Positions 8,557 to 59,900 of a DNA stretch of 64,000 nucleotides are shown here, piece after piece. The stretch covers positions 19,980,628 through 20,044,627 of the forward strand of contig OZ037767.1 of NCBI GenBank assembly GCA_964035545.1, in the 5' to 3' direction. Positions within the stretch are counted from its first letter, which is position 1; each line of letters opens with the position of its first letter. Under the pieces are notes generated by a model. That model was not told the origin of the DNA, did not search any database, and worked only from the letters and a program-made list of their open reading frames with translations. Source of the stretch: Bugula neritina (Eukaryota > Animalia > Bryozoa). A program made the position numbers and the translations under genes.

Positions 8557-8559
8557 ATT

Positions 8560-13659: not shown

Positions 13660-21498
<7,839 letters not shown>

Positions 21499-28261: not shown

Positions 28262-30890
28262 TCAGACTCGTGACCAATTTCTGTAGAAAGTAATGTCACT
28301 TGTTCTCGTAAGTTCTCTGGCCCACCTGTGAGCTTCTGGGACGTCCCGATGACTCAAGAGCCCTTTCCCTTCATTTGAAAGATCTAGCTTCTCCCTCCAG
28401 ATGTTGACTATACTTTCCTTTGATGAAACAATCTTTCCTGCAACAACAGGCGCGGCCAAGTCTCTTAGCTCAAGTAACACTCCTACCCTGGAGCCATGAG
28501 TCTACACATCCTCTGATGTTTGAGCATTGGTATTAGAAGTTTAAGGGCCGGCACTCCAAGCCCTTCGTCCTCAATGTCGACGTGTAGGACCACGCTCGAA
28601 CACTGCTCCATGACCTTGAGCCATCTCTTCACTGATGAGCGAATTAGGTAATCTAATGCACTCAACGGCTTGGAGGATGGCTCAAGTAGTACCAATTGAT
28701 GGTAAAACTTCGGCACAAAGTGCTCTCTTGAAAGGAATAATCTTTGTTGAGGCTTTAGTGGCGCTCGAGACAGCCTCTCTAACCCGATGGTAATCTCCTT
28801 CCTAGAGTTTGACCCCTTAAATTTCACACCAACCTGGGCGCCCGGATACCAGTAAGTATCCGTAATGGGTACAGCCGGCACCTCGACCCCATCCACCGCC
28901 AAAAAAGGTTTGCTGTCTGAGTACCACTTGCCTTTCCTTGCTCCAATACTTATTGTTGCACTTTTACTTGGGTTTGCTACAAACCCCGCTCTACTTAACT
29001 CATTAATTAAAAGCTCTGTGTTGACGCCCAGACCCTCTTTACTTTCATCAGAAAGGACAATGTCATCAGCGAAAGCCATGTAGGTAATCGCCAGGTCAAT
29101 TACAGTGTTGAACAGGTGCACGAACATATAGTCCCCCTGCTTGATTCTTCTCTTTGATGTTATGCTTTCAGACAATGTATCCCCGGGCACCAGTCTCGTA
29201 CTACTCATTCAATAAAACTTCGAAAAGTACTTAACCAAATGTTTTGAGATACCTAGCCGCTTACAAGCTGTCCAAAGTGCACCGTGTCTAATGCTGTCGA
29301 AAGCCTTGCGCATGTCCAGAAATGCTAGACGGAGGTACCGACACTTTGATTAAGCATCACTAATGCATTTCTGCAAGAGTAAAGAATTAAAAAAAATTTC
29401 ATCACCCTACCGAAATCCTTTCTGACAGTGAGAGATTGGAAGCAAACATTCCAACCTCCCTCCCAAGATACTGTGATAGAGTCATAAAAAGACAGAACCC
29501 ACCGTAATGGGCCTGTGCTGACTCGGATCAGCAGTATCCGGGGCCTTCGGTTTGGGAGTAGTCCTCCCCTCGCATATTCTGGGTGGAACAGAACCTAGGT
29601 GAAACCAGAGGTTGAAAAGAGAGGCGAGTTCCTTCACCTTGTTGTTCTTGAGCATCCGCCACGTCAAGCTATCCAGTCCCGGTGCCCCACTACTCTTCTG
29701 AGAAAGGTATTTAACTACCTCCTCTTCCGAGATGGGGTCCATAAGACCGTCTAGCCTGACTTGGGGATCGTTGTACTCCGGCGCATCGATTGGAAAATTT
29801 TCTCTCCAGCAGTTTGGTCTAAGACTCCTCTGCGCCTTCAAGGATAGAATCCTTGAGTTCAAGGCTATCCTGAAGAATACCACTCATGAGACGCTTGGGG
29901 TCTCGGCAGAACATCTTCAGTACTCATTTAAAGAGACGTCGACGTCTGCGATGACTCGGAGGAGTCATCGAGGGAGCCCCAAGGTCTCCATCCTGCCTGA
30001 TGGCACCACCGGAGCTGGTTTTCCGAACTGCTGGAAAGAGCCTCTCCAGCGATGTGTCGAGCACATTTTGATCTATGGCGACATTTTCGTCTGTGATCTC
30101 ATCTCCGAAAATGAGAGACTCTTGTGTCTCTTGATGGCGAATAATTTTTCCTTGACTTGAGATTCGATGAGTCTTCAACTGATTGCGTTTCGGGCATATT
30201 ATCGGCTCTAGCCTATTCTTCAGCAAGTAGCTAAGAATATCTTACTTTTTTATTCCTTTGTCTTTTGATCTATTTAACTGTATACTCAGGAAAGCATTTT
30301 TCCAGCTCCTGAGTAATATGCTTTACTCCTTGCAGTTTAAGTTTCACCTCCTCTCTAGCCAGTTTCATCAGCATTCCGTCGTCCCATTTTAACTTTTTTT
30401 ACTTTTTTTCCAGCTTCTACCTGATGTTAACGCTCCTCGCGAGTTCTCCTCAAATGTAGAGAGAGACCACGTAATGAGCTATATGCTGTACCACATGGGG
30501 TGCACTGGTAGAAAGTGCAAATTTGACAGATCCCAGGTCTGTCTGAGCCCCAATCTGAGTACTTTGAAAATTCAACAAAATTCTCCACTATATCCCGATC
30601 CGTCCCGGTCGAACAACTACAGTTGCCTAACTGCTGCTCTGGGCACACACCTGCATCGACAGAGGTACAAACCCCAGTGGGGGTTTCGTTACGCCTATGT
30701 TTTGCTGGCATATCCTCTGGATTAAGAACCTCAGTTCTAAAAGAAAAAGAAAAAAAGGCAAACTGAGGTAATGCACTATTAGCCGCTGGAAAAAGGCCAG
30801 CGTTTCCGACTCTCACCACGAGGAGGTCATGCCATCTCACAGCGGCAATGTCGATTGCTTCCTGGTTTTTTATAATTATATGATTCTCGA
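28262..30890 (-). mobile_element. R2 non-LTR retrotransposon, lineage A copy 1 (5' UTR, ZnF, Myb, RT; frameshifted, 3'-truncated)
   Basis: CCHH finger, Myb-like region, GAPGLD, QHRPITV, IKQGD, MAFADD, LSRAPLKPQQR; HDV-like ribozyme core upstream. Confidence 0.9.
30771..30835 (-). ncRNA. HDV-like ribozyme core in R2 5' UTR (P1 5' strand missing)
   Basis: Minus strand GCAUG-ACC-UCCUCGU-GGU-GAGAGUC-GG-AAA-CGCUGG-ccuuuuu-CCAGCG-GCUAA-UAGUGC gives P2 (with one bulge), P3/L3, P1 3' strand, P1.1 GG, P4 and J4/2 with the catalytic C. Confidence 0.8.
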
Positions 30891-31373
30891 CCACTCTTTT
30901 TCATGGCTTTCTCCTCGCTGAGTTGACATTCTGCCATACTGTTTGAACGCTCCGTGCCAGTGTAAAAATATTTTTATTGTGCAGGTTATCAGTCTTACTG
31001 CGATGCCCTATACACAATGATCAAGATGAAGAATTGGTTTAGTCACATTATAGACCATGGACTCTGTGTAGTCTTCTGTGTAGACATACATAAGTGTTAC
31101 CCTTGTATTTACAGACAGAAAAACAACTATAGGAAATATCAACCAATTGTAAGAGTTCGAGAAATTTAGGAAAAGTGGAAATCTGCCATTCCTTGGTTTA
31201 GGCTAACAGTTACATCTGCTGCAGATACAACATCTACTTCTACATCTCTCATTTCTTCTGCAAAACAAACTTCAAATAATATGATAATGTCCTATATAAA
31301 AATCTGATATGGTTAGTGAAAATGCATTTTACGATTTAGATATGAATTCACACTGCTCCTGTTTGAACAGCTA

Positions 31374-32705
31374 TTTTTTTTTAAACGCGTGTCTTCCCTC
31401 TATCCGAGGGAAGGAACAGGTTCATTAAACCATTTTGATGTCAACCCATGGCTGAGAGGCTTTTGGAAAAAGGGATTTTTACCGGCCTGTCTTTCAGGGG
31501 TAATAACTGAAAAAATTTTAGAAAATATATGACAATGTAAATTGTCCTACCAGTCAATCTCCTCGATCTCATTCAATGTCACTGTCGATTTATTCCACAT
31601 GTCGTAGATATAAACTCCATACTGCATTGTTCGCAATGACAGTATTGGTAGCTCTCTTATACTGATGAAATCCTTACAGAATTTTGCACTTTTCTCGCAT
31701 ATTGCTCTCCTCCAATTCATGATGAATCCTGCTATCGACACCTTCTTCTTTTGACTTACTTCTTTTGCAAATGTCCATACCTTTTCCACGTTGTACTTAT
31801 CCACTTTGCCTTTATAGGGTACTTTCAGAGCCACATGATCAGAGACGATGACTATGTCTAGCACCTTCACCTCGTCTGAGACTTCGTGCCAGTACACTAT
31901 GTCTGGTTTGAGCAACCCTGACGCGTCTCTGATATGTGGCTCCGAATGCACCCCAAACCCTTGTTTTTCTAACCTGTTACATAAATATTCTACTATGGTG
32001 TTGTGCCTGTGTACACGTGGTCCGTGTGATCGTGGGCATGTTTGTAATATGTGACTGAGTGTGTGTGGGGTGTTGATACATACTGGGCAAAAAGCCGAAA
32101 CACCTTTATTTATTCTATTCCTTAGCGAGTTGGTTACTAGTGTTTTATATCTTAGGTGATTAATTCTAATATAATCCTGTCCGCTCAATATTCTTGTTGG
32201 CTCTCGTGTCCATCGGTGTGCTTGTGGTACCTTATCATGCTCAGCCAGGCCTTTTCCATCGGTTGTATTTATCATCTTTTCCTTCCATAGGTTTTCTTCC
32301 TCTTTTTTTGTTCCCTATGCTCTTTCCCATGATCCTGGGCGGCGCTAGCTCCTTTGGTTCAATAACAGCATCGACTAACGGGTCTCCGTAACCTGTCAAG
32401 CGAGCAATTCTCTCAAATCTCAACCTCCTGATTGTGTATCTGAATGATGGAATCCCTAGTCCTCCCGTGTTAACCGGTGCGTAAAAATTTGCACTGGCAA
32501 AATGAATATGCACCTTCAACCATTTCTTACATTCTGCTCGCACTATATAATCTAGATGCGTCAGTACTTCTCCAGTTGGAGGCGATAAGATGAGTGCGTG
32601 ATAGTATTTAGGTAATAAAAAGGTTCTTGGTAAAAATAGCCTTTGTTGCGGCTTGAGGGGTGCTTTTGATAGTTTCTTTACAGATGACTCCAAACTCTTC
32701 AACAT
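31374..32705 (-). mobile_element. R2 3' half (thumb, CCHC knuckle, restriction-like endonuclease, 3' UTR, poly-A)
   Basis: KAPLKPQQR, GGLGIP, CPVC...HILQTC, RHN, EPHI...KPDIV...D...KVDKY; A9 tail at 31374-31382. Confidence 0.9.
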
Positions 32706-33299: not shown

Positions 33300-33400
33300 T
33301 CACTTTTTCCTTCGCTTAGACTTGCACATTTTAGCATAGTGTCCAACTTTACACAGCGTGCTCATTTGTAGTATTTAGCAGAACTTGTTCCTCCCTGTGA
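33300..33400 (-). mobile_element. Gag zinc-knuckle remnant (LTR retrotransposon)
   Basis: Minus strand encodes CKVGHYAKMCKSK. Confidence 0.45.
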
Positions 33401-35599
33401 TTAACAACCACATCGGCCTCATAGGGTACCATTATTTTGCTTAACATTGTTACTCCTAAAGTTGTTGTGTTTCTGGAACTTGGTAAAGTCGTATTCTGTA
33501 GGAGGATTAAACCGCCATAACAAAAAAATTCACTTTAATCATGTAAACTAGAATAGTTATTAGCTATTAACTTCAACTCAACACGTACTGGTACTTTGAT
33601 ATGTAACGAGTATATAGTAGTCTTTTTTATATGTCCTTCACTGTCGAACTCCAGTGGTAGACTAATTCTACGCCGGAAACTCGCCTACATATACAATCTA
33701 AAAATTGAAGCAAATAATGGAGCTCCGAAAATCGATATCTTCTGACTTTTGGTCAAAGATTGGCTCACAGTACACAAAAGAAAAACTGGAGAGGTAAAAG
33801 CAAACAGTCAATTATGCCAAGGGTGTAACAGTTCAAGCAAACAGAAACTACTTCATTGCAATTACAGAATATGTTGTAAATATATCTCCCAAAATTTACC
33901 AGAATATAATACAAGTGGATTTTTTCGACTCAATTCCACATTTTTTTTAAATTGAGATGAGTCTGCTCCTCCTGGCATATTTCTTCAGTTGTTTCACTTC
34001 ACTTTGTTGTGATGAAATTATTCACATTTTTGTTTTTTGTTCTATGTCTTACTTCATAGACATTTTTTTCTCAAATGCAAGCTAGACAATTAGCTTGATA
34101 TAATTATCATTAAAAATTTAGGGGAGGCACTATTGTCAGGTGCTCTGCATAACCTAGCCAGCCTGCAGCAGCAACCCACCTCAATGAGCAATATTGTAAT
34201 TAAGATTCTCCATATTACACTGAATAACAAACGCCATGTTAATAAAAATTAAACATGTGTGCTGTGATAAGTTAAGCAGGTGTAGCAATTATTGTAAACA
34301 TACTTATAGTTTAAATACAAATACAAAACTAACTATACATGCACATATATGAATGCATATGCACTGTAAAAGCAAAAAGGAATTCTTTTCATTTCGTGAA
34401 AAATCTTGGGATTTCGTTCTTTAGCCCTGTCATACTCGATCTAAACTTTTGACTCGAGTTTTCTGAAGCAGCATTGACTTTTTTAGCAACTTGGTGATCT
34501 ACTTTGTACATGTATTATTATAGATATATTACCAGACATTTTACACCAAATATTGTGTCTTTTGGCAAGAAATTATTATTGGATCCCTCAACAACTCTGT
34601 GATATTTCGTTTGATAACTTTCTGAAAGTCTTAAACTGTTCAACAGATTTTCATTCTGTCACCTGCAGTATGACAAACTATTTAGATTGACTCTTCTGGA
34701 TTTTACCGTTTACCTTTTCCACCTTTTACTCCATTCTAGCCATGTTTCTAGCAAGAAGACAAGCTCATCTGGAAGACTGAGCTAGAACTTGCTGTTAGTC
34801 AACTCTAAGGCTATTTTTCGAATGAAAATATATTGAAAGTTGAAACTGAAAAAAGTCACAATTATTTATTTTATTTTGCAGTGGCTACCTTGTTGTGCTA
34901 TCTTGTGGAAACTGCTTTTTGTGTATTTATGCCTCCCCCCCCCCCCCCCCAGTAAGACAATGTAGTTATACAAATAGTCTGGAGAAGGCAACTTCATAGT
35001 AGCAAGTATTACAACGCCCATTGTTCCAAAGTGCATAATCTGCACCAATCAATTCTGCTTACTTGAAGCTTGACTTCACCAATGGATTTGTGTTCACTTG
35101 CTCATCAGTCAAGTTTTTTACTCTGTACATCAGCTATTACCATATTTTGCGGTGAGTGCGAGATATATTTTATTCCTATCGCACGGGTCATGCTATGAAC
35201 TTTTGGCCACATTTTATAAATCTGCTGAATGATAATGAAGTTTTTTCACCCTCAACTATGGTTTCTCGATTTCATAGCATATCGAACTCTTCTGCTAGTC
35301 TATTTTTAATCGTAGTGTTTTAGTTTTCTCAAATTTATAACAAAAGCTGTAGTAAAATGTCATCTTAGCATCTGCAAATATTGTGGAAATTCAAATATCA
35401 AACACATAAAAGATAATAAATTTGAATATTTCTGTCTTACTGGTTTTTGAGTGCAAAAAAGTGCCGAAACGTGAATTTGCTGCGGAATCTGAGGCCAACT
35501 TCGGTTTGTCTGCCGTACAGTTTCTAAATATAATTAATCTTCTTAATACATTTTCACTTTTTGTAGTACCAAAAACTTGCAGCATATTTCTAGGCAACT

Positions 35600-36430
35600 C
35601 AATCATATGACAAGATCTTGCGAAACAAATATCTTCTGATTGTTTTAAATGAAGAATGGCCTGACCCTTTCAAATTTATTTGGATGCCTGCACCTAGGCA
35701 TATAACCAAAATAGCTGCATGTCCATCCATAGTTATACACAGAATCGGCAAACCATGGTGATGGTGTGTTTCAAGCATATGAAGTAGTAGCTCTTGTAAC
35801 GTTTGAAGCAGAAACTTGTAATAAAATAATATGCAACTAGAGCTTTCCATGAGTGACCATTTTGAACCAGTCAACATTAAAATTAGCACTTCAGTTACTT
35901 CTCTCCCAACTTCTGTTGGACCATAGTCTAAATTGGAATAACCAAGGTTAGGCAGCAGCTAAATCAACGTCGAAAACACTTTGACAGCAGCATTCAGCAT
36001 TAGTATTATAACAATGAAAAATGTATTACAATTATCAACACCAAATTAATAAACACTTCAAAAAAATATTTTTCAATAAACCTGCTAAGTGCAATGTTGT
36101 GGTTGATCTGCTTTTTTTGCAGATAGACCGGCTACAACAGCTTTGTTTATGTTTGGTTTACAATCTACAACTTGGAGCCATTTATGTAAAACATCAGCCA
36201 CTCCACATACATATGTGTAAATACATAAATAACTAATAGCATAAACTACGCTCATTGAAAAGAAATATCAGAGAAGTCCAACCCTTACCTTCTCAGTGAC
36301 CGGGAAGAAGGCAAGGTAATGTCAACTGTAAGAAGTTGATAGGTTTTTGATGAGTAATGGTGCAGTCAAGTGCAAGCTTTTTCACACACAGACTGAGTAT
36401 TTGCCACTTTTGAAAGTTAATGTATCTCCT
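35600..36430 (-). mobile_element. P-element/THAP9-like transposase relic (intron-containing)
   Basis: LHHYSSKTYQLL...LPSSRSLR (36288-36427, bounded by AG and GT), TEVLILMLTG / SWKALVAYYF and LCITMDG motifs in shifted frames. Confidence 0.7.
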
Positions 36431-37099
36431 GAAAAACCTGTAAATTTAGCAATCAGTTTTTCACAACGCTCGACACTTTGATAAACAATAATTATGATTA
36501 TGAAATAATTATAGTAGTTTGGAATCCGCCTAGCTTTTTTTCAATTCGTCATTGGTCAGATGTTTTTATTAAAACAGGTCAATGCATTCCTCCATTTTTA
36601 TTTTTGATCTTTTCTCACATTTTTGATCTTTTCTCTCATCTTAGCACTGACTCTACTGTGGGACGCCGTGGTTCACCAATTTCCTTCCTGCAAGGACAGC
36701 TTCTTCGGTGGTGTCCTTCGCTGTCACATCCCCAATAATCAGGGAAAACCTTCAACAGTAGCAGTTCTGGCCATTCGGCTACCTTCAACTGTTGGAGGCG
36801 ATTTACCTCGGCCAGCTGCTCTTTGACTAAACCTGCTGTCAAGCCTGATTCAACAGCTGCTGAAGTCGATGTGGTGGCGGCCACATAATTGAGTGTAGCT
36901 GAGTTAAATATTGGCGGTATGTTTTCTTCCTCCACCTGATGAGCATTCACTCCTGGCTGCATTGTCAGTTTGGAAATAAACATTTCCTAGCCGAAGGGCT
37001 CTCTCCATGAAATCAACATCCACGACCATTTTATCACTTTCTCACTTGTGCTATTGAAAAATACACCCTCAAAAAATACGCTATAGTAATCTATAGTAA

Positions 37100-37430
37100 C
37101 AATAACATGTGACCCATTTGGCAGTGGTCTGAGCAAATCAGCACTCAAAAATTACCATGGCTTACGTGGCATTTTAGTCATTGACAAGGGTTCTGGTGGG
37201 TTTGGTAGGCTTAATTTACAGTCAGCACAATTTCCGCAAAGTTTCTCAAACTCGTCATCCATTTTAGGCCACCACACTTTAGACCTACGTCTTCGTTTTG
37301 TTTTCACTGTGCCGTGATGCCCTTCATGTGCTAATTTCAGCACATGTTCTCTAAGTGTAACTGGTATTACTATCCTACTACCTCTGAGTAACCCGCCACT
37401 TTCACTTAAATCGATTTGCTGCATTTGATT
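37100..37430 (-). mobile_element. Gypsy integrase zinc-binding (H2C2) fragment
   Basis: LLRGSRIVIP..LREHVLKLAHEGHHG...VWWPKMD...CADC...PRKPW. Confidence 0.85.
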
Positions 37431-40344
37431 TTAATGATTCTAACACATTTCAAATTTCTTTGCCTAAACTAGAATTAGCTACCATACCATTCTAATTAAT
37501 AGCTATTGGAACTACCTCTAACATTCTGCCTAGCCTAATCATCTGCTGCTACTTCAGCGATGCTGTTTACTTTGTGGTTGAACCTCAGTGGTCGCCTAAG
37601 CACTGGTTGAGCAACTGGTGTTACTGTTTTATCTATGTGGAACTTTTTTTCACTCGTATGATTTTTGTCACACCTTAACGAAGTTTTGGAAACTTTCTAA
37701 AAATTTTTCGCTGATTTTAACCACTTACATTAGAGATGTTGCCACAAAAGACAAAAGATATAAATCTGTGGCTGTTTTACTACTGTATCTAGTAAAACTT
37801 ACAGATGATTTTAATGCAGCTTCTTTAACAATGCAATCTACCGTTTTGGCCCGGTATAAAAAGATTCGAATCTATGTTCTCTTCAATTGTTTCCATAGCA
37901 AAATAAAATTTACCATATTTTCATACGAAATAATTCTATCTGCGTAAGCTTGAAATATATAAAACTTTGCAAGTTATAACATTTTTTACAGAAATAATAT
38001 ATCATATTATTTATGTTGCCATGAAACCAGCCATAACCATGAAATATGCAGGGCTAAACTGTACTCAAATTACATAATACCATATAGCCCAGCTGGCTTA
38101 TACCTGTACAGTTTCATATTGCCATCTATATGAATCTTATGGGCAGATTCTTGGCAACATGGGCATTGGAATGCATTGCAAAGTGAGTTTGGATAACAGG
38201 ACTCTGTTTTACGCCATTCAGGAGTAAAATATGCCTCTGAAATCAATGAAAAGTGATCCATCAGCTGTTACTGGCCACAACGCCAGTTTTGTTACATCGG
38301 TCCAGTGGTTCACCATTTTCCACTGGCAACACGGGCATGTCATCAATGTTATTGATACTTACTGTGATCCTTTGAAAATAACAGCATTTAGGTAAGAAAT
38401 TGTGGAATGGCAAAAAACTAGACCCTATTTCTTGAGTTTTACTAATCGCAACAAAAACAGGTTATAGACAAGGTTTTATCTAAAAATCATGATAGCAATC
38501 ATATTTATTTATGTAAAGAAATAATAAAACACACTTGGAAAGAAAACCATTCTTCTCACTTTATAATTATTCCATAGTAGCACCAATATTTTTACTCATC
38601 TAGATTACAATTTTTCTAGTGCAATTATGTAATTAATAAATTGGTCTCTCAAAGTGAATAATGTCTATATTTTACACAACACAGTTACTGGTACAACACA
38701 ACAATAATCATGAAACTAGCGTATCAGTCAACACCACAAACTGTCTATCATTGTTTTCATTACAAAAGACTGATGCACAGAAATTAACCAATCAAGTTGT
38801 AGTATCAATCTGGTTAGCATGACCTGTGTGCATGATTAGTCAAGTTGCAGCCCACAAATTACAAATATGAAACAGCTTTAGATACATCAACAGCCTATGA
38901 ATATGCATTTTCGTAAGATGCTCAGTATTGAGTAATAGGGAAATCTACAGACGAAATGCAATAATTTGTGTGATTAAGAAGGCGGCACATTGTAAGATTG
39001 GCTATAAAGACCGTTGACAATACAAATTAAAAGCTGTTCCACAATTTGAAAATCTTCAGTTCTTTCTGGTACATAGCAAAATAAAATTTACCATATTTTC
39101 ATAAGAAATAACCCTATCGGCCTAAACTTGAAATATATAAAACTTTGTAAGGTATAACAGTTCAACATTTTTACAGAGATAGCATATTATTTTTGTTGCC
39201 ATGAAACGGCGATAGCTATAAAATATGCAGAGCTAAACTGCACTCAAATTCCATAATACGATACCTCCCAGCTGGTTTGTACCTATTCAGTTTCATGTTT
39301 CCATCTATATGACTTGTATGGGCAGATTCTTGGCAACATGGACATTGGAATGCATTGCAAAGTGAGTTTAGATAACAGGACTCTGCTTTACGCCATTCAG
39401 AAGCAAAATATGCTGCTGAAATCAATGAAAAGTGATCCATCAGCTGTTACTGGCCACAACGCCAGTTTTGTCAGCTCTGTCCAGTGCTTCACAATTTTCC
39501 ACTGAAAACACGGGCATGTCATCAATGTTATTGATACTAACTGTAATCCTTAAAAAAGCAGCATTTAGGTAAGAAATTGTGGAATAGCAAACTGTCTATC
39601 ATTGTTTTCATTACAAAAAAGCTGATGCACAGAAATTAACGAATCAAGTTGTAGTATCAATCTGGTTATCATGACCTGTGTGCATGATCACTCAAGTTAC
39701 AGCCCACAAATTACAAATATGAAACAGCTTTAGATACACCAACAGCCTATGACTTTGCATTTTCATAAAAGATACTCAGTAATGAGAAATTTACAGACCA
39801 AAAGCAATAGTTTGTGTGATAAAAAGGTGACAAATTATAGGATTGGCTATAAAGACCATTGTCAATAAAAATTAAAAGTTGTTCTGCTACTGTAAAATCT
39901 TCAGTTCTCTCTGGTACATAGAAAAATAAAATTTACCATGTTTTTATAAGAAATAATTCTAACTGCTTAAACTTGAAATATATAGAACTTTGTAAGGTAT
40001 AATGGTTCAACATTTTTACAGAAATAGTATATCGTATTATTTGTGTTGCCATGAAACGGCCATAACCATAAAATATGCAGACCTAAACTGCACTCAAATT
40101 ACATAATACGATACCACCCAGCTGACTTGTACCTGTAAAGTTTCATATTCCCATGTATATGAATTGTATGGGCAGATTCTTAGCAATACGGACATTGGAA
40201 TGCATTGCAAAGTGAGTTTAGATAACAGGACTCTGCTTTACGCCATTCAATAATAACATATGCTGCTGAAATCAATAAAAAGTGATCCATCAGCTGTTAC
40301 TGGCCACAATGCCAGTTTTGTCAAATCTGTCCAGTGCTTCACAA

Positions 40345-40630
40345 TTTTTCAACAAAGGCGATCCACAAGTTCCTCCCTCTCTTCTTTGCATCCTCAATAC
40401 AACTCCGAAGTATCAGAGCATTCATGAATATTCCGTCTCCTTTGCGGAAGCCCTTTTGTCTCTTTGAAATAGGTAAGAGCCTCTCTAATCTTCTTCCCAG
40501 TATGCTATGCAACACCCTAGCAAAAACTGAGTTAACCGTGATTGTCTGAATTCGCTAGGGTCCTGCGTGCCTACAACCTTAGGTACTAGGGTTGTCCTTC
40601 CCTCGCAGATAGCTGACGGCATTTTTCCTG
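40345..40630 (-). mobile_element. R2 RT fragment related to the 56.5-57.9 kb copy
   Basis: GKMPSAICEGRTTLVPKVVGTQDPSEFR and, after a frameshift, QKGFRKGDGIFMNALIL. Confidence 0.85.
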
Positions 40631-40639
40631 TTCCTGCTG

Positions 40640-44060: not shown

Positions 44061-44099
44061 CCATTTAAAAATCTTGAGCTGCCATTATTTTATTATCAT

Positions 44100-49300: not shown

Positions 49301-49900
49301 TTTGGGCATCAATCTTGCCATTAGTCCACTCAGCTAGGAACTTGAGGTCTAGCCTATCGAGTCTCTCACTCTTCCACTCATTCTGGCCTACGGTGAAGGG
49401 CCTGTCTTCTACTACCATGCTACTCGCTCCCACAGAGTTAGTATCCTTTGCAAGCCTAGTATCATTAAGCATTTGGTTGAAGATGTCATACCGTGCTCTT
49501 GCTTTAATCGCTTCTGCGGATCTGTTTGGGTGCCTCACATGCAAAGCTCTTTACAGCTGTGCTTTGACTGGGTAAGCTAGTTCTAATTCTACCCAGTCGT
49601 AGGCTAAATCGACTAATTCATACCTTTTCCAAACAGTCCGGTTCTTGCCCTCTTCTACAACCTCCTGCTCTCGCCCAACTTTCTGAGAATACCACTCCGT
49701 GTGCACGCTTCTCTGATGTTGTGAACATCCTACTTTGGAAGGATAGCGGTTTGTACACTCAGGATATCTGCAGAGCCACTTTGGCACGCAAGCACATGAG
49801 TACATGCGCGAGGTTCCCGCCATCTCTTCCCCACACTCATCGCACCGGCCCCGGTGGTGGTGTTGTTGTTGTTGTGTCTGGTGTTTTTGATACTTGAAAA
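46366..49900 (-). mobile_element. Near full-length degraded R2-type element, lineage C
   Basis: N-terminal CRYPEC...HQRSVH finger, Myb-like region, RT (FWPITV, DVKKAFDSVSH, VKQGDPLS, MAFADD), CLTC..HILQTC, RHN, KPDL..D endonuclease, ~470-nt 3' UTR. Many frameshifts. Confidence 0.88.
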
Positions 49901-50529
49901 AGGGTTTCGACTCAGCAACTCTCCTGCGCCTCTTGGTGCTACAACTTCCCTTTTCCTAAACGCAACTTTGACTGTCCTTTGTTGATTGTCACATCCTTTC
50001 TTTTGCCGGTCCCTGCTGTTATAATCAAGTATCTGTGATTTGTGTTGAACAACCTCACACTGCCGAAGTAGGCTCAAATCAATACTTTTGTTAGGCATGA
50101 CACCTGTATAGCTCAAATAACAACTAAATAAAAGCTCACCTGGTGAGGAGCCATTGCTCCAAAAGCGCATCTCAATATGCATGCAGCATGAACTACAGCA
50201 TATACACATGCTTTAATTTGCGGTAAAACGAGTTCTGTGGATGCCTTCCTGACTACATTGATATATTTTTCCTGAATTTTGAGAAGAGAAAGTTATAAAA
50301 AAATTTCTGGTCTGGAACTTCAAACTATGTAAAAGCTTGTATTTCCTTCTGCTCTAACCACTTAGCCTAATTTCTGCTGACTTTTGGTGGAATGGAAACC
50401 TTTATTTCATGATCACAGACGGGTTCAAGTTTAAATAGAATTCGTACTATTCTAAACTGCAATTCCTCGCCTGTGTTTTCCTGTTCTACTGTTTGAAGTT
50501 ACTTTTGTATTCTCCATTTTAGGCATATT

Positions 50530-53190
50530 GTAGAGGATTTTTATGGTGAGACGAGTGATCTAACGTTGCCTCTACACAACTACTTGTGAGGGTTATTGTG
50601 ATAAATGTATGACTGTTTTAACGGTGATAAATAATTCAAACTGGAAACTAACTAAATTCCCGCTGTACGCAGGCTTGAAGTTGACCTTTGCGCAGTTGGC
50701 CTCTAAACAAAATAATAATTTCAAGTTGAAAAAATCAAAGTGAGACTGACAGCTGACAAATCTTAACTTTTCTTGACAGCTCCATAGATAGTAGCCACAT
50801 CGCCCGATTGTAGTTGCAATGTTGCTACTTTGTCGCAGTTCGTTCTGCCTGATCCAGCTTTTACCGGTGAGGCAGAAGAAGATAATTCTTCCACCGGCAC
50901 TACAGAAGAAGATAATTCATCTGTTGTTGAACTCTAAGGCAGATCCGTTTTTTTACAAATTTCTGGCTGACCGATTGGATTTATCTCTGAGAAATTTTCT
51001 GTATCTACTAGATCAGCAGAAGATTCTAGTTTTGTTACCACTAGAGTTGAAAGATGATCCAAACTCTTAGCACAGCGAGGTCAGGCGGTGATGAGCTATC
51101 TGATACATCACTGCCAGCAACAAGTTCTGCTTTAGTAAGCCCCCCCCATCTCGAACGTCCATCTACCGGCATTGCTTGCAATGATAGCAAGTCCTTCTGC
51201 TGAGACCATCAGTATTTCCATGGTGTATTCCCTTCCAATGTTAAATTTTGTATTGGAATTCTCCTAAGAACTCCAGCTACTTTGCTACTTGACATGAAAG
51301 TTCTTTCCTATGGTGCAGCCACAGCAAAGATGCATGATTAGTTCGAATTAGAAATTCTCAGCCATATAAATAAGGTCGAAAGTGCTTTACACACTTAATT
51401 ACAGCCAGAAGCTCTCGTCTGGTAACACGGTAATTACGTTCTAGTGGGGTGAATGTCTTACTATAATAGGATATCTATTGTTCTCCATTTTGAATCTTGG
51501 ACAAGACTCCACCAACACCGTCTGCGTCAAGAATATAGAAAGCTTAGGAACAGGGTATCCAAGCACGTGTGAGGCTACAAGAAATATTTTCAAACTATTA
51601 AATGTTTGTTTCCAATCTCGAGTTCAGCAAAAAAAATGGATGGAGATGTGAGGCGATTCAGTGGACTCACTAAAGATGAGCAATTCGGAACATATTGATG
51701 GTAATAGCCCGCTATTCCAAGGAATGGTCTCAGCCCTCAAACATATTTTGGAATAGGCTACTCACAAACATTTTTAATTTTTTCTGGGTTAGTAGACACA
51801 CCATCAAAACTATGTGCCCCAAATATTTTATTTTCTCTTTGAAAAACTCACATTTACTTGGCTTCAACTTGAAGCCAGCAGCTTGTAGGCGTTCAAAGAC
51901 TACACGTAACCTCTTAACTTGGGAGGCTAAACTATGATATCATCCAAATACAGCATAAGTGTTTTCCAATGTTAATCTCTCTTTACGGTTTCCATTAGAC
52001 GCCTAAAACAAGCTGGGACAGAAGCAAAACCAAATGGCAACAAACGTCATTACCACAACCCATTTCTAGTTGTGAAAGATGATTTATGTTGAGCATCTGC
52101 ATCAAGAGGAAGTTGCCAATATCCTGATATTAAATCTAAAGTACTAAACACTTTGCTTCCTGCTAACGAACCGGCTTTTCAGGGCCTGGCAAACTAACTC
52201 AAGGGTACTCCCTCTGCCACAATCGGTTGCTGCCCCTTCCAAAGCACCAATAAGGTGCAACAGAGCTTCTGCATCTGTCCATCCATTAGCCTCCTTTATT
52301 TTTTGAAATTGCTGGAGATACAACTCAACATCTCAGCCATCAAATTTCTGTAATCTGAAGTTATATCTCCTACCTCCACCTACTCGCAGTAAGTCAACTA
52401 ATCTATCCAATTGATTTCCTTTGAACTAGAGATGGAGTTTTTTGAAGTCTACCAGGAGGCATTATGAGAGAAATGCAAAGTAAAATTTAAAATATTCAAT
52501 TTAAAAAAACAAGAATCATATAACAACTTATCTTCAATAACCAATCCCACTGCTGCCACCAGTCTAGAGGATTTTTTTGGTAAAGCGAGTGATCTAACCT
52601 TGCCTCTACACAACTATTTATGGAGGGTATTGTGATGAGTGTATGACTACTGTTTTAACGGGGATAATCTGTCAAATACAGTATCAACTGGAGACAGCAA
52701 GAAAAGATTATTCTCTTGCTGCCACAACCTGCCTTTATTTATACCAGCCTACAATATAAAACTGGTTATGACGGAGATAAGCAGTTACAAACCAGGCAAC
52801 CGCAACTAGTAATGAATAATTAGTTACTTGCAACCAATAACTACACTGAGATTAACAGTGTAAGTTATTGTCAACCTTGGACTAATTATAAAAGCGGTGA
52901 GCAATTATAATTAGACAACCTCCTAGTAGACTGAATATTGCTGTAGGTTGAGTGTATTTCTGTGTTTTTAGTTATCACAATCAATTTACCATTGCATGTT
53001 CAGGTTATGTAAAAACAAAACTCACTTGGATATGCTTATGAGCATTTTGTTATCGGTAATTGAAAACACGACCACGCTCAAGTAACTCAAACTAGAAATT
53101 AACTAAATTTCAGGCTTGAAGTTGACTTTTACGCAGTTAGTCTCTAAACAAAATAATAACTCTTAATTGTAAAACTCAAAGTGACAGCAA
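50530..53190 (-). mobile_element. Internally deleted gypsy LTR retrotransposon with two diverged LTR-like repeats
   Basis: Direct repeats ~50530-50755 and ~52562-53190; PBS-like TGGTGGCAGCAG at ~52550-52561 (minus); RT FSTLDLISGYWQ..PFG and RNaseH remnants at 51300-52170. Confidence 0.75.
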
Positions 53191-53941
53191 ATACAATTTA
53201 ATCTAAATTTTATAATTATAAAAAACCTATAAAAAGTAAATAAGATATATATATATAAAGACAAATCCATGACAATATTTTGCTCATGCTGATATTGGCA
53301 GTTTAATCTTAATTTTTTTATAAAATTAAACTATTAGTCATTTTATTGTTGATCGGTTAAGCTACTGGTGATAGAATACATTCAAATCCTACTTAAAAGG
53401 ATGCATAGTTGACCTCTATGCAATGGATAGAATGTGATGTATTGCTCGTGACTTGAAAGCTAGTGAAAAAATGTTACGGAACTAAATTGAATTGTGTTGG
53501 GGTTCTTTCTTGTGCATGCTAACTGTACGACAACTTCACATTTTTGTTTTATTCTGGTATCATGAGACAGTACTACATTCATTATAAAGCAGGTAGTTAC
53601 TTCAATATAAAATGCTGCTTTGGTAAAATCTCTAACCATACTGATAGGATATGAATAAAGTTTAGAAAAGCAATTGCGATTTTTATGAAATTTTTTACCT
53701 AGAGAAAAATGTTTCTACACTCTGTATTTTAGCGTTATCTCTAATGCAATACTTAAAAGTGTATTTTTTGGCGAAGTAAGATGAAGTAAACAGCTTGACT
53801 ATTTTGCTCTATATTTTCAATTTACTTCAACTTAATTTTGACTAACGATAGGATCCTTAGATAGTTAATAGTGATCCCTAAGCATCATATTTATAAAGTT
53901 TGTTTATAACCAGTAACATTGATTGTGTTGGTGTTGTAGTC

Positions 53942-56900
53942 ATGGGGGTACGCTTACACTTTGCTAGGAATAAAACCACAGCACAGGAAATTATTCAGTC
54001 AGTTGAGCCAGAAAATAGAAAAGACCTTCTTTTATATATTGACAATAATCAACGCACAGCCTTACACGCAGCGGTTACTCATGGCAGAATTGATGTAGTG
54101 GAGTACCTCTGTAATTTTTTTCCCAAGAACAATGAATTAATATTAAAGAAGGATTGCTATGGATCGACTGCTTTACACTATGCTGAAGACGGCGAAGTTG
54201 CAAGAATACTTGTTGAATCAGTTACTCCAAATAAGCAAAGAGTTTTAGTATTTTCTGCTGACGATGATGACTGTACAGCTTTGCATAGGGCAGCCTTATT
54301 TGGTAGGAAAAACGTTGTACAGTATCTATGTAATTTATATACAATCAAGGATGAATTGATACTCAAAAAGTATAGTGTAGGTGGTACAGCATTGCACTGT
54401 GCTGAAAATAAAGAAATTGCAAAACTCCTTGTAGAATCACTTGTGCAAGAAAAGCAAAGAGAATTGCTGTTATCTGCTGACGAAGATCATTGGACAGCAT
54501 TGCATAGTGCCGCTCACTCTGGCAAAACAGACATAGTAGAATATTTTTGTAGCTTGCAACAAATTTCGGAAATGGTAGTGATGAAGGCTGACGATGGTAG
54601 GACTGCACTTCATCATGCTGACAATAAAAAGATAGCAGCACTATTGATAGGGTCTGTTGCACCAGAAGATCAAAGCAGTTTTGTATTTGCTGCTGACAAG
54701 TCTCTGAATGTAGCTGTGCATACAGCTGCTCATGCTTGTAGAACTGATGTCGTGAAATACTTTTGTCACCTTTTCTCTGATGAAATAATATATATGACAG
54801 AAATTGACGGTTGGACCACTCTACACTGTGCTGGAAATCGTGACATAGCTGAGTTTCTTGTAGAGTCAGTGTCACCAAATGAACGGCGCAGCTTTATATT
54901 GTCGACTGAAAAAGACGGTTTCACACCATTGCACACAGCCTCAATACTAGGAAAGGCTGATGTGGTGGGATACCTGTGCAGTGTCTTTCAAACTAATTAT
55001 GACCTAATATTTGCACAATCAGCTAACCGGTATACAGCGTTACATGTTTCACATAACAGACAAGTTGTTGAAAACATTTTCAGTTATGCAGGGTCTCCTT
55101 TGGTAAAAGTTATCCTGGCAGTAGAGGACGATAAAGGTAACACGCCTATTCTATCACTGACTAGGTTTGGGCGATACGATGCTTTGGCAAAGCTTTTGGA
55201 GTATGTGGAAGAAGATGCTGACCCATCCACTTTATTCATTCATTTACAAAAGCACAATAAACTTAATCAGAATATTTTACATCTAGCAGCTTTATCGCCA
55301 TCTCTCAAAGAGTTATATGATGTGTTACAAGATTACCTTCCCGGGATAGATATGAAAAGTATGATGTCTTCTGATATATATAACAACACCCCTATTCACT
55401 ATGTTGCTGCCAAATATGACACTGCAGTATTTACAGATTTCATGCTGCATCTTCCTTTGTCAAAAAGACAGCGTATCGCAAACTCACCAAACATGCAGCT
55501 CACTAACTGTAGAATGATTATTAATCAGAAAGCCTTTAAAGAGCCATTTTACATTCATGATGTGCTTTGTGATGAAGCAACAAATACCTTAGTATCCAGG
55601 TTTGCTGATGTCCATTTGCTCTTTAACGAAGATTGGGAACAGAAATTTCAGCAAACGAATGAAATCTACGTGTATGATGAAAATATTCTCAAAGTGCTAA
55701 AATATTCTCTGAACGAATACTCACTCTTGGATGCTGCTTACATCACATCACACACTTTGTTCTCTTTGGCGGTCGACGAGCAAAAGTCTATACAGTTTTA
55801 TGAAAAGCAGAAAAGCAAAGTAAGAATACTGTTTCTATTGGTATTTTAGTAATGTTGGTTGTGCCCCTCTTTTGTGGTATAAAAAGTTTTACGCTTAGAT
55901 GCTGCAAGCTTCTAACTGAAATTAAAATAAAACCTTTATTTCTGATTTTTATTATCACTGGGTGTCAAAGTATTTTCAATTTTATTTTATAGTTGGTATG
56001 TGCTTATTGGTGCACTCATACTGAACTGGGTAAAGCAAAACAGAAACTGTGATGTAGAGAACTAGTAAATAAATTTTCCTTACTAGTGTAATCCAAGCGT
56101 CGATTGTTTTTTGGAGCAGCTTGGTATTAAAATAAAGGCCATCGCCTTTTTTAAGCCCTTCTGGCGATCGTAGGGAAGTTTGTTTGCAAAGCGCTCATCG
56201 AGAATACAATGGTATAGTCTGCGAAAAGTAGCGGTTACAGTGATTGGTCTAAATTCTCCTGGATCAGTGGTGCCAATGACCTTTGGTATAAGTTTAGTAA
56301 TTCCCTTGGGTATGCTTGATGGTGACATACCGATTACCAGCCACAGGTTACAACATGAGACGAGTAGTGTCATGTTTATTTTCTTAAGATCTTTCCATGT
56401 GTATCCATCTAAGCCCGGGAAACCTTTGTTCTTTTTTCCTAAAACATCTTCAATTTCTGTTGGTGTGATTGGTTGCAATAGTTCATTATAAACATGCTGC
56501 GCTTCTAGATGTCGGTTGTCAGCTGTTTACCTATCCTCAAATCAATGACTGCAACTCTCAGGTTTCTCCCCTTCTTTTTTGCGTCCGTAATGCATCTCTG
56601 AAGAATCAAAGCGTTCATGAATATTCCATCTCCCTTACGGAATCCTTTCTGCCTTTGTGAGATAGGCAAGAGTCGCTCTAGCCTATTACCCAGAATGCTG
56701 TGGAACAACCTAGTGAAGACAGAACACACAGTAAAGGGTCTGTATTCACTAGGGTCCTGTGTATCCACAACTTTTGGAACCAGAGTTGTCCTACCTTCAC
56801 ATATAGTTGATGGCGTTTTTCCACACAGGAGCCACAGATTAAAGAACGAGGCTAGTTCCTCAGCTTTGGTGTTATTCTTCAATTTTTTCCATGTGAACCC

Positions 56901-59900
56901 GTCTGGGCCTGGTGCTCCCTTGTTCTTGACTGCAAGCGCTTGTTCTACTTCTTGGGCTACTATCGGCGCCAGTAGCTCGTTTAGTTGTGGATGCTTTTCA
57001 CTACATCTAGGCATAGTTTCATCAGGGGGTCCCCTCCCTAGAAGCCCCTCCCAATACGCTTCCGCGCCTTCCGGTAGACACCCATTGCTCTGCCCTAGTG
57101 TACCCAACAAAATTTGGTCCACTAGTCTTCCTGGATCTTTTCTAAATAGTTGTTGTGCCTTTCTATACATTCTTCTACATGTCTGGTTTTTACCCACCAG
57201 AATTCCCTCTGGGATGTTCTTCTTGTTCGTTTGTTGCTTCAGGGGGGGAAACCTCCTGATGAAAGTTCTGTCTAGATACTCCTGTGTAAGTTCAAGTGGT
57301 AGGTAATTTTCATTACCGGATATGTGGGTCTCATTGATCGCTTCCTTCAGGGCTTTTCTATAATCTCCTTGCTCATCGTGGGAAGGTGATGCACTTGCCA
57401 TCTCTTTATTCTGTTCGCTTTCCCTCTCCTCTAGTATTTCTTTGTACCTTGCATTTTTGTTTCTTACTCCTTTGATTGCTTCTATGGTGTGTTCCCTAAA
57501 TTTTTCCTGCAGACGAATGTTTATGTTAGATCTTCCTTCCTTTTCAAGCTGCACCTCTTCCCTGGCTAGTTGTATGAGCATCCCATTAGTCCATCTTACC
57601 TTCCTAGCTCCAGTCTTTGCTTCCTCGTGATGGTATCTTTCCGTGTGAGATCTCCTTAGATGCTGTGATAGCCCTGCTAACTTACCATACGCTGACTTAC
57701 ATATTACACATTGGTGGAAACCACAGATCGTACATAGCCATGGTTGTTCATTCTTCCATTCCGCGTATTTATTTATTTTTACCATTGATATCCTTTTATC
57801 TGTTCTGGTAATACACTTTACATTACCGCATTGTTCTAGCGGGCAATCCCCTTGATCACCAGTGGTAGTGGCCTCAGTGGAGGCTGCTTGTCGCCTAGTA
57901 ACTGGCATATCCACTGGGTTTAGAACTAACGATGTTGAAGCTAGTTAAGTGCTTTTAGTCGTCTGTTAGAATAACTATGTTCCTCCAGTAGGCTTCGGCC
58001 GTAGGTGGAATTGAGGCCTCCTCATCCTCATAAGTGCCAGAGATAATCTGTTGAGTGATTATCTTCGGATCCGATTTTAAACCATTTTGCACTTTCTCTA
58101 ATATATCTTTTCTCCTACCCGATGTCACCTTTTTTCTTTGATGTATCACTTTCATACCTTTTATTGGTGTTCCTTTACTGGGGAAGTTTGATTCAAATAC
58201 TTCATCTATAAAATTTTGGCATCCAATTAAAGTTTTAGGGTCTGTCAATAATACCATTTTACTACACATTAAGTCAAAGTCGATGTACCTTAGTATGAGT
58301 TTGAAGTCCGTATTTAGTGCCCCTTATCGAGTTGGAGTGTTGTTAGAGTCTTCTTCGTTTGTAGATGTCAACCTACCTCCACTTTCTTCTTTTCGGATGT
58401 TGTCCAGAATTTCTTTATACTGTGGATTCTTGTTCCTCACTCCCTTGATCTGCTCTATTGTATACATAGGTAGTTTGGTTTGTATACGTTGGTTGATGTT
58501 TCTTGCTCCTTCGAATTCTTTCTCCCATCTGGCTACCTCTGATAGGGTTTCGTAGTTTCATCGTTGCTTCTTTACAATTGGCACAGCTGCATGATAGAGT
58601 TCACTGTGTGCTCTCCTGAGATGGAGCGAGAGTCCTGCCTGTTTTCCGAATGTGTGTTTACATACAGAGCATGTAAACTGACCACAGCTTTCACACCTTA
58701 CAGGCATCGAGTCCTTGAACGAAATATACTGCATCAGGTGGTACGTTTCTGTTGATTTGCAAACCGGATTTGCACAAATTATATTAACTGCACCGCTATA
58801 TGTGAGCGGTGCCTGTGGTCGAAGGTTTGTCGCCATGTTAGGACAAAACTGGCCTGATGGTAAGCCGACTTATCACAATCCAGAGACAATACTCTGGAAG
58901 GTGATAAAGAGAGATGCAGGTTATCCTGGCCGTCAGTCATCTGTCCTCCGTTAGCCACTGGGAAGGTGTCCCAGGGTTACCGACTCTCACCACTAGGAGG
59001 TGGAGGTACAACCTTTGATGCAAGGATATAGCTGTGATCAGCAGCTATATCAGTTGACTCTAGCTTTATAATGAAAGTTATGTAACTTCTCTTGCACCCA
59101 TTAAGTTTCACAATCTCTGCACAATAATATTGCATAAGTTTTTTGTCTATCATTTGGGACAATGTACAAAATTTGTTAAATGCACATCTTGGTTACTTTG
59201 TGCTCAAATGAAAACTCAGAACTGCTTTAAAAAGATTTGCTTTCGAGTATGTACAATCTCTTTGTGATTACTTTTCATTAGGCACTAAACAGGGAAGAAG
59301 ATTCTATTTCAGTCTTCATAGACATTGGAAAAGTAGATGAGCCAATACACACATCTGTACAAAATTCACTCAATACTATGGATCTGCCTGAATATAATGG
59401 TAAACCTAAGGTATAGATGGCACTCAAGTTGCTTATAAAGAGAGAAATTTGAAGTTACCCAATGACTGCAAATGTCGAAAGTAACTTAAGCATTTTGCAC
59501 TTTTCTTGTAAAAACGCAGCCCTGGCATAGCACATGTATTAAGCAGCGTTATTGATGATGTCTTAAATGGCATGTGATCATGATTGCTGCTCTAGTGCTT
59601 TCGAAATATTGTTGACATTTGTAAGTCCATCATAGCTTTTCTAAAGCCCTTGTCAGAATTCTTACTAGAGATGTGACTATAAATGATTATACTTATAATT
59701 ATGCATTTGTTTAGCAGAAATTGATAGCTCCTAAAACTCGCTTTCTTATATTTCATCTAATTAAGTATAAATAATCTTTTTCTCTGTGTTTCTCCACATT
59801 TTATTGTCTATGCAGTTCACTTTCTTCTTGTCTGTATTTCAAAGAGTAAGTATCTTTCTTTTGATATTGTGTAGATTTAAGCTACCATAATATCTTTATC

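Follow-up and report, generated by a model that had tools for sequence, protein, structure and literature searches.

A one-strand transposon nest in Bugula neritina enriched in R2 fossils outside the rDNA

R2 is the textbook site-specific retrotransposon, normally rDNA-specific and now in development as a gene-insertion tool. Its 5' HDV-like ribozyme serves excision from the 28S co-transcript, and target-primed insertion does not produce 3'-truncated copies. Bibillo and Eickbush, in work of 2002 and 2004, reportedly observed template jumping by the R2 reverse transcriptase (RT), the described jumps running end-to-end, and Morrish and colleagues are said to have described endonuclease-independent LINE insertion at DNA breaks in 2002.

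Copies of R2 outside the rDNA have been found in five Drosophila species (Stage & Eickbush 2009, PMC2718515). R2NS families, which are without target specificity, occur in a planarian and a liver fluke, with some copies >98% identical to their consensus (Kojima et al. 2016, PMC5035012), and non-site-specific R2 homologues are present in sponges (PMC13188248). Drosophila R2 piRNAs are strongly antisense; their source was stated to be unclear, and the authors proposed that they derive from damaged, TE-rich pieces of rDNA that lie in heterochromatin beyond the rDNA cluster (bioRxiv 10.1101/2025.04.30.651568).

The locus described here lies in a 64-kb window (the whole stretch of DNA that was analyzed) and partly resembles each of these systems. 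Its R2 pieces match the R2Bm type (the "D" architecture with a single zinc finger) in having a single ORF that encodes an N-terminal CCHH and Myb region, an RT of R2 type, and a C-terminal CCHC and PD-D-K endonuclease; a candidate 5' HDV-like ribozyme motif may be a further common trait. They also nest in the R2 protein tree, with a clade member and a sister element at the canonical 28S site. Unlike R2Bm-type elements, the seven pieces all lie outside 28S, each is broken or truncated (in several cases at the 3' end), and no intact master was seen in the assembly. As among the Drosophila non-rDNA copies and R2NS, R2-clade copies lie outside 28S, often incomplete and with non-28S flanks. Here, however, several deep lineages are stacked in the same orientation within 31 kb and include R2-in-R2 chimeras, divergence from the only 28S-resident copy is 15-19% rather than 1-2%, and recent bursts like those of R2NS are not evident. 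Tens of kilobases of nested fragmentary transposons from several families, in one orientation and downstream of an opposite-strand gene, recall a uni-strand (flamenco-type) piRNA cluster, although the content is unusually dominated by a normally rDNA-specific element and any promoter, through-transcription, or piRNA output here would be putative. Template jumping and endonuclease-independent insertion have in common with this locus co-oriented chimeras of different RNA templates, junction microhomology, and 3'-truncated inserts that lack both poly(A) and target duplications. In contrast to the described R2 jumps, the putative switches here are internal, and both come back to the original template 0-78 bp from the point of departure.

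The nest and its seven R2 pieces

From 28.3 to 59.1 kb, the window holds a nest of dead transposon fragments that all lie on one strand. Seven fossil R2 pieces make up ~42% of this 31-kb zone and belong to four R2-clade lineages that diverged long ago. Host genes on the plus strand border the nest on either side, and part of it may lie inside them. Pfam matches on the plus strand mark an upstream gene with protein-kinase exons (13618..14966; weak, below gathering score), a host-type ankyrin-repeat ORF of 650 aa (53897..55846), and a caspase-domain exon (61119-61406); R2 delta and the beta 5' part lie between the latter two. A profile HMM of 60 full-length R2-type proteins (1005 positions, given below as hmm positions) matches the window on the minus strand only, opposite to the flanking host genes, and finds nothing in the 64 kb beyond the seven pieces. 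Boundaries drawn at the DNA level agree within ~100 bp with those of an earlier note on this stretch, whose seven R2 pieces are thus borne out.

Alpha copy 1 (28301..30900, minus strand like all that follow; HMM match 28301-30395, hmm 47-797) keeps its 5' end and ribozyme motif, is 3'-truncated at about hmm 797, and is broken over at least five reading-frame fragments; its nucleotide identity is 78-81% to alpha copy 2 and 78% to a copy at C8:5.17 Mb. The beta 3' part (31366..32699; HMM match 31577-32699, hmm 620-1000) is 5'-truncated at hmm 620, retains an intact CCHC and restriction-like endonuclease region and a 3' UTR, ends in A9 followed by TAGCT, and is 96-98% identical to a copy at C9:0.317 Mb. 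An internal fragment, beta2 (40349..40634; HMM match 40351-40634, hmm 334-428), shares 92% of its nucleotides with a full-length R2 on L043 and 75-77% with beta. Alpha copy 2 (44116..46379; HMM match 44116-46121, hmm 5-118 and 397-943) has a 524-aa open frame and no ribozyme, with hmm 119-396 deleted internally, and its 3' truncation at about hmm 943 directly abuts a Gypsy fragment. Between its 5' end and the 3' end of gamma lies a 260-bp spacer (46380..46639), which matches none of the sequences compared, rDNA included, and whose predicted fold is no better than that of shuffles. Gamma itself (46640..49956; HMM match 46851-49781, hmm 8-996) is of near-full coding length, yet it is split into at least six frame fragments; it ends in ...GGAGACGTGA without poly(A) and is 88-94% identical to copies at C3:19.72 Mb.

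The beta 5' part (56534..57975; HMM match 56535-57722, hmm 7-431) has a 479-aa open frame, begins within the ribozyme motif, and is missing the 3' half of the element. It interrupts delta, whose RT start (56098..56541; HMM match 56149-56520, hmm 272-397) is cut off at 56098 and whose 5' half and 5' UTR occupy 57977..59102 (HMM match 57976-58695, hmm 3-264). The two delta parts are contiguous in uninterrupted copies on L024 and L019, and the 5' boundary is common to a copy on L037 with different flanks. Two head-to-tail pairs, beta 3' part to alpha copy 1 and gamma to alpha copy 2, are separated by unrelated spacers of 260-470 bp.

The DNA between the R2 pieces is made up of Gypsy-type, P-like, and dispersed-repeat sequence. 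One Gypsy/Ty3-type element is represented by a gag-proximal part at 43029..44118 and a pol part at 37018..37784; the former has 80% nucleotide identity to a relative on L040, whose 1306-aa ORF contains gag, RT, RNase H, and integrase domains. The 5.2-kb insert that splits this element comprises repeats related at ~82-92% and the R2 piece at 40349..40634. A second, more diverged LTR-retroelement pol fragment lies at 51316..52368 (tblastn E 1.7e-23), and a P-element-like (TNP/THAP9-type) transposase fragment lies at 35461..36631. The minus strand of the nest holds seven R2 pieces, two LTR-element fragments, one P-like fragment, and one repeat ORF (two-sided sign test for co-orientation ~0.002, ~10 independent pieces being assumed). 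Between 28 and 54 kb, all 2-kb bins have a negative GC skew, and most have a negative AT skew as well.

R2 identity and lineages

The seven pieces are R2 by descent and ectopic by location. The top matches among solved structures (PDB phmmer) are always R2 proteins, with R2Bm at E values of 8e-53, 5e-29, 2e-22, and 4e-17; LINE-1 is matched in two of these searches only, at about 1e-5 to 1e-6. The earlier note allowed that the families might fall outside the R2 clade, and a phylogeny places all of them among 150 R2-type proteins, in a tree built without the named non-R2 RLE outgroups R4, NeSL, and Utopia. The tree supports four lineages, alpha, beta (with beta2 as a sub-branch), gamma, and delta, with amino-acid identities of 34-59% between lineages and 73-97% within them. 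The N-terminal regions of all four are present and mutually different, as had been claimed. A single CCHH zinc-finger motif is found in alpha copy 2, beta, and delta; it was not found in gamma, where it is probably mutated. Residues 63-172 of alpha copy 2 align with R2Bm 107-217, the N-terminal DNA-binding region. At the other end, alignment of the beta 3' piece with R2Bm 864-1090 shows conservation of the aligned C..C..H..C and KPD..D..K residues, gamma aligns with R2Bm 865-1101 (the CCHC and restriction-like endonuclease region), and the remaining pieces lack this region.

Candidate HDV-like ribozyme motifs occur on the minus strand at the 5' end of alpha copy 1 (30769..30846; Rfam RF02682, 26.4 bits) and in the delta 5' UTR (58942..59022; Rfam RF01787, 23.4 bits), both scoring below gathering and the latter lying ~80 nt within the element. 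The motif core CCTCC..GTGGYGAGAGTCGG..GGCTAA is invariant in an alignment of alpha, beta, beta2, delta, and a genuine 28S-resident R2. Compensatory changes affect 5 of the 12 predicted pairs, mostly in one stem, in a model that leaves out the nested pseudoknot.

rDNA and the R2 census of the assembly

Nothing in the window resembles 28S, 18S, ITS, or IGS sequence: no rRNA family scores above threshold, the 28S target 20-mer is not found with up to 3 mismatches allowed, and blastn with the 28S locus and two 10-kb rDNA stretches yields zero matches. The earlier statement that rDNA is missing thus stands, and the rDNA array is on another contig, about 13 Mb-equivalents of assembly away. A 28S flank (canonical site TTAAGG/TAGCC) was found at 0 of the 7 R2 pieces. 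The beta 3' junction in the window, A9 and TAGCT, can be set against 28S TAGCTAAATG at a beta-clade copy at C9:1.47 Mb, which occupies the canonical AAGG/TAGC site of a 28S pseudogene off the rDNA array; the 28S-like tag is 4-5 nt at the beta 3' junction and 10 nt elsewhere. The 28S site region is uninterrupted in all 19 of its other assembled copies. The sister of delta is a metagenomic R2, P0002 (L044/L045), with a 28S 5' junction. Relatives at 28S, which the earlier note had suggested looking for, therefore exist for beta and delta, but no intact R2 copy was found in the assembly, where open frames reach 637-747 aa at most. In the assembly, alpha, gamma, and delta have no copy in 28S. The ends of gamma and delta show no 28S similarity, and unrelated non-28S sequence flanks two 5' and two 3' ends of delta and two 3' ends of gamma at different loci.

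A uniform spread of R2 across the 216-Mb assembly would put ~0.01 tblastn rows in the window; instead, 9 of the 32 R2-type rows (~28%; E up to ~3e-10) fall within it, an enrichment of about 1000-fold. The earlier note had named dispersal at similar density across the genome as an outcome against its proposal; the concentration seen in the window is far above chance. Only 1 of ~18 R2 loci, the pseudogene copy, is in 28S. With every other locus outside 28S and intact gamma and delta ends in non-28S flanks, the premise that these elements are strictly site-specific is not supported by what survives here. Each R2 family has 2-6 copies or fragments. Nucleotide identity within families is 68-94% for alpha, gamma, and delta, beta alone reaches 96-98%, and several pieces are 12-22% diverged from their nearest copies. 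The locus holds every R2 lineage detected in the assembly, opposite in strand to the flanking host genes, in line with the proposal that it samples the R2 diversity of the host in antisense. Every other R2 locus examined is a co-oriented mixed transposon nest, and the one-strand layout recurs in two other clusters, at C3:19.72 Mb and C8:5.17 Mb. Contigs of one DNA run, which cannot prove absence, contain no extra alpha copy at ≥90% identity. Because rDNA units with R2 inserts are often under-represented in assemblies, active masters residing in 28S may have escaped notice.

Chimeras, origin, and possible small-RNA output

Within the window, the beta 5' part is inserted in delta with zero delta loss and with TTTGAG microhomology at the 3' junction. 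A second chimera, at C3:19.72 Mb, has beta within gamma, with 78 bp replaced and microhomology at both ends. These chimeras point to a putative R2-specific clustering route, either RT template switching or cDNA/homeologous recombination, both of which would preserve orientation and leave microhomology at the junctions. The special capture route proposed earlier gains from the beta fragments nested in delta and gamma, but such a route accounts for nested pieces only.

Our main reading, to which we give slightly better than even chances, is that the locus is a general strand-polarized transposon nest enriched in ectopic R2 fossils and no dedicated anti-R2 device. We infer that the R2 pieces would have arrived as ectopic copies, through rare off-target or endonuclease-independent retrotransposition. 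Some may have joined pre-existing R2 copies by template switching or by cDNA/homeologous recombination between co-expressed lineages, and deletions and nested insertions would later have eroded them. R2, Gypsy, and P-like fragments would persist if the genome retains insertions in co-oriented nests antisense to neighboring genes. This reading leaves the two head-to-tail pairs unaccounted for. Moreover, a generic nest should sample by abundance, yet R2, with 2-6 copies per family, makes up 42% of the zone, and something R2-specific or selective is therefore needed.

Such selection is the substance of the first alternative, a dedicated memory against R2 as the earlier note had it: rare ectopic insertions would be kept because antisense transcripts silence each lineage. 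We consider this unlikely but not negligible. The four lineages lying antisense to plus-strand genes, the roughly 1000-fold enrichment, the same one-strand layout at C3:19.72 Mb and C8:5.17 Mb, and the strongly antisense R2 piRNAs of Drosophila (bioRxiv 10.1101/2025.04.30.651568) all speak for it. However, the two Gypsy-type elements and the P-like transposase fragment share the strand of the R2 pieces, the other R2 loci are likewise mixed nests, no intact R2 that would need silencing was found in the assembly, and the 12-22% divergence of several pieces from their nearest copies marks them as old.

Alternatively, alpha, gamma, and delta may have lost 28S specificity, as R2NS did, and survive in nests as dispersed low-copy LINEs with nothing R2-specific about the locus. 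Their absence from 28S and their intact ends in unrelated flanks at different loci fit this account, as do the precedents in planarian and liver fluke (PMC5035012) and sponges (PMC13188248). We nevertheless find it rather improbable: copy numbers are tiny, near-identical recent copies are missing, unlike in R2NS, and alpha and delta appear to keep the 5' HDV-like ribozyme motif. Dispersed families would also not leave 28% of their remains in 64 kb, and R2-in-R2 nesting, seen twice, is unexpected under random insertion. A decayed remnant of a translocated rDNA array piece, in which adjacent 28S genes each carried R2, would explain the shared orientation, as tandem units yield co-oriented R2s, and could appeal to the off-array pseudogene at C9:1.47 Mb and the TAGCT at the beta 3' junction, but it is largely refuted and very improbable, as rDNA similarity is absent although R2 sequence just as old or older is readily recognized, the flanks of intact R2 ends are unrelated, and Gypsy-type, P-like, and dispersed-repeat sequence fills the space between the pieces.

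Under our main reading, transcription of the plus strand would give antisense RNA against four R2 lineages and other families, and a putative role as a piRNA source, general rather than R2-dedicated, is plausible. A bolder and doubtful extension is that this interval and the clusters at C3:19.72 Mb and C8:5.17 Mb form a transcribed uni-strand piRNA source that keeps a record of R2 lineages both extinct and living and provides antisense R2 piRNAs. It would be fed by an R2-specific route, with R2 cDNAs joining R2 sequence already in place through template switching or homeologous recombination, and a first capture would thereby seed further ones.

The development of R2 as a gene-insertion tool gives its off-target landing practical interest, and the locus shows at the sequence level what ectopic R2 products can look like: inserts truncated at the 3' end, inserts with microhomology junctions, and inter-lineage chimeras. 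A secondary 28S-like target elsewhere in the genome is possible. The locus is also a candidate answer to the question raised in flies of where antisense R2 piRNAs originate and, if small RNAs were shown to arise from it, would provide a natural system for host memory against an element normally confined to rDNA.

R2 identity and lineages of the seven pieces

We built a profile of 1005 positions from 60 full-length R2-type proteins, gathered using an R2 ORF of this genome, and scanned the window with it in six frames. Matches are exclusively on the minus strand and confined to the seven places that the earlier note had named, here designated alpha1 (28301-30900), the beta 3' piece (31366-32699), piece 3 (40349-40634), alpha2 (44116-46379), gamma (46640-49956), the beta 5' piece (56534-57975), and delta (56098-56541 and 57977-59102). 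In PDB searches, the top match of every piece tested is an R2 protein, with R2Bm at E values of 8e-53, 5e-29, 2e-22, and 4e-17, whereas LINE-1 ORF2, a match in two of the searches, reaches about 1e-5 to 1e-6. One CCHH finger is present in each of alpha2, beta, and delta, the alpha2 N-terminus aligns to the finger/Myb region of R2Bm, and the beta 3' piece retains the endonuclease motifs CCHC and KPD..D..K. Alpha2 also keeps a 524-codon open frame (44808-46379, minus strand) even though an internal deletion has taken some 280 profile positions from the part between Myb region and RT. Such an ORF is long for a fossil, and a recent deletion or constraint could be the cause.

A maximum-likelihood tree was constructed on profile columns 300 to 900, for which the fragments of each broken copy were aligned one by one, breaks were left as gaps, and zero residues were added. 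Its four supported groups, alpha, beta, gamma, and delta, sustain the claim of at least four R2 lineages; amino acid identity is 34 to 59% between groups and 73 to 97% within them. Piece 3 falls in the beta group, on a sub-branch designated beta2.

The R2 identity of the references was set by 28S junctions on their contigs. The sole 28S-resident R2 copy in the assembly (216 Mb, 321 contigs) belongs to the beta clade and lies on contig C9 at 1.47 Mb (C9:1466000-1475999). It is 5'-truncated and occupies the canonical site in a 28S pseudogene fragment off the rDNA array, with an A18 tail, a 28-bp target deletion, and the junction ...GCGTTT(A)18|TAGCTAAATGCC. The pseudogene is 88 to 95% identical to functional 28S and is adjoined by spacer-type tandem repeats. 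The sister of delta is the reference protein P0002, and two marine-metagenome contigs with this protein show the 5' junction ...CTCTTAAGG(TAGC)|. The beta-clade copy in 28S and the 28S junction of the delta sister thus identify the window pieces as R2 by descent.

Alpha1 and delta have weak HDV-like ribozyme matches at their 5' ends. The core of this motif is unchanged in alpha, beta, beta2, delta, and a genuine 28S-resident R2, with compensatory changes in one stem. Two delta copies, that in the window (57977-59102, minus strand) and one in another stretch of the assembly (L037:2488-2729), have about 80 nt in common upstream of the motif. A ribozyme cutting at its own 5' end would strip these ~80 nt from the RNA. 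Possible explanations are cleavage at a site still further upstream, an inactive ribozyme, or a DNA-level relationship between the two delta copies.

R2 copies across the genome

The window occupies positions 19980628-20044627 of contig C3, whereas the rDNA array is located at C6:7.12-7.27 Mb, and three more 28S copies are on contig C135. The window itself is free of rDNA, as the earlier note had held: an Rfam scan at the gathering threshold, a search for the 28S target 20-mer with up to 3 mismatches, and blastn queries from the 28S locus and from two 10-kb stretches of rDNA came back empty, which largely rules out an rDNA relic. The note also asked whether intact relatives sit in 28S; the 19 other assembled 28S copies across the R2 site are all uninterrupted, and the lone resident is the truncated copy in the pseudogene.

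The assembly holds about 18 R2 loci, with just 2 to 6 copies or fragments per family, amounting to roughly 0.03% of the genome. No intact R2 occurs among these loci, where the longest open frames span 637 to 747 amino acids. The window contributes 9 of the 32 R2-type protein rows of the assembly, and about 13 kb of the 31-kb interval from 28.3 to 59.1 kb is R2. Further clusters lie on the minus strand at C3:19.717-19.729 Mb (three gamma fragments with a beta and an alpha-like copy), on the plus strand at C8:5.169-5.181 Mb (two beta copies with one alpha), and at C3:21.37 Mb. At C3:21.374-21.378 Mb, an APE-type LINE (Exo_endo_phos and RVT_1; L019:8432-10000 and L037:1-1521) sits in the same orientation inside a delta copy and parts its N-terminus from its RT.

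A possible secondary R2 target outside rDNA was observed on C8 (...ATCACTAA|TAAGCCAAAG...). Two 5'-truncated beta copies (L032:3042-5317 and 7278-9703; C8:5.175-5.182 Mb) and a full-length beta2-type R2 on a JGI metagenome contig (L043:1-5922), 92% identical to piece 3 in nucleotides, all sit at one flank nucleotide, identical in every case (...GGGTAATCACTAA|). Identity is 88 to 92% in the flanks but only about 71% in the R2 bodies. Downstream, the flank begins with TAAGCCAAAG and resembles the 28S sequence TAGCCAAATG; the DNA directly beside the R2 copies does not belong to a high-copy repeat of this genome.

Ends, joins, and proposed insertion route

Intact R2 ends adjoin unrelated, non-28S DNA. 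The delta 5' ends of the window and L037 share the start base but have different flanks, and flanks likewise differ between the delta 3' ends of L019 and L022 and between the gamma 3' ends of the window and L021. Ahead of the most complete beta copy, a 21-bp tandem repeat (CACCACAGAGCATGGTTACAC-like; L018:4600-4718, C9:0.3157 Mb), not 28S, lies directly against the ribozyme. The 3' end of beta departs from this pattern: it is A9 followed by TAGCT in the window, and at C8 it is followed by TAAGCCAAAG, compared with TAGCCAAATG in 28S. The endonuclease may thus have kept some of its preference, or short tags may have come from a co-transcript. Alpha1, alpha2, delta, piece 3, and the beta 5' piece lack 3' ends and are therefore not simple target-primed products.

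Relative to the uninterrupted copies in L024 and L019, the delta element of the window accommodates the beta 5' fragment with zero loss, and the 3' join shows TTTGAG microhomology. In a second case, at C3:19.72 Mb, 78 bp of gamma have given way to another beta fragment; both joins show microhomology, and the 3' one is near in-register. Both nested fragments are oriented as their host element. Two insertions of a rare element into so small an R2 share of the genome cannot be chance, and we infer that the joins would reflect either cDNA/homeologous recombination or an RT that switched templates among R2 RNAs expressed together. In two places, 260 to 470 bp separate the intact 3' end of another lineage from an alpha 5' end downstream of it; the gamma-alpha2 spacer has no match among the compared sequences and folds no better than its shuffles.

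Simple segmental duplication is rejected as an origin of the cluster: what the window has in common with the locus at C3:19.72 Mb is R2 sequence alone, not flanks, and alpha1 and alpha2 are 78 to 81% identical with different truncations.

The surrounding nest and its interpretation

Beyond R2, the 28.3-59.1 kb interval is made up of remains of further transposons on the R2 strand, including a Gypsy-type element split by a 5.2-kb insert containing piece 3, a second LTR-element pol fragment, and a P-like transposase fragment, all minus. Inside the Gypsy-type element, about 5 kb of mutually similar repeats (37880-42850; blastn pieces of 0.2 to 1 kb, 82 to 92% identical) embed piece 3 and another repeat ORF. 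Dispersed repeats extend from about 22.6 kb onward. All 2-kb bins between 28 and 54 kb have a negative GC skew, and in most bins the AT skew is negative as well.

Most of the 21 window ORFs outside the R2 pieces have no Pfam match. Host-type coding signals are on the plus strand throughout, with weak kinase exons (13.6-15.0 kb), a single-exon ankyrin-repeat ORF of 650 amino acids (53897-55846), and, downstream of it, a caspase-domain exon (61119-61406). The delta and beta 5' pair sits between the ankyrin ORF and the caspase exon and may be intronic.

In its layout, the nest resembles a flamenco-type piRNA source. Contigs from two sequence runs show only DNA-type coverage and, in another sample, a gamma copy with 93% similarity. 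In Drosophila, the source of strongly antisense R2 piRNAs has been called unclear, and the proposed source is damaged, TE-rich fragments of rDNA that lie in heterochromatin outside the rDNA cluster (bioRxiv 10.1101/2025.04.30.651568). The suggestion that the locus is a dedicated anti-R2 memory loses ground because its content is mixed, all other R2 loci examined are co-oriented mixed transposon nests too, and intact R2 is apparently absent. Its premise of a site-specific element is also weakened, since nearly all surviving copies are ectopic; R2 outside rDNA (PMC2718515) and R2 families without specificity (PMC5035012) are documented. What is still unusual is the extent of R2 enrichment at this locus, together with the R2-in-R2 joins.
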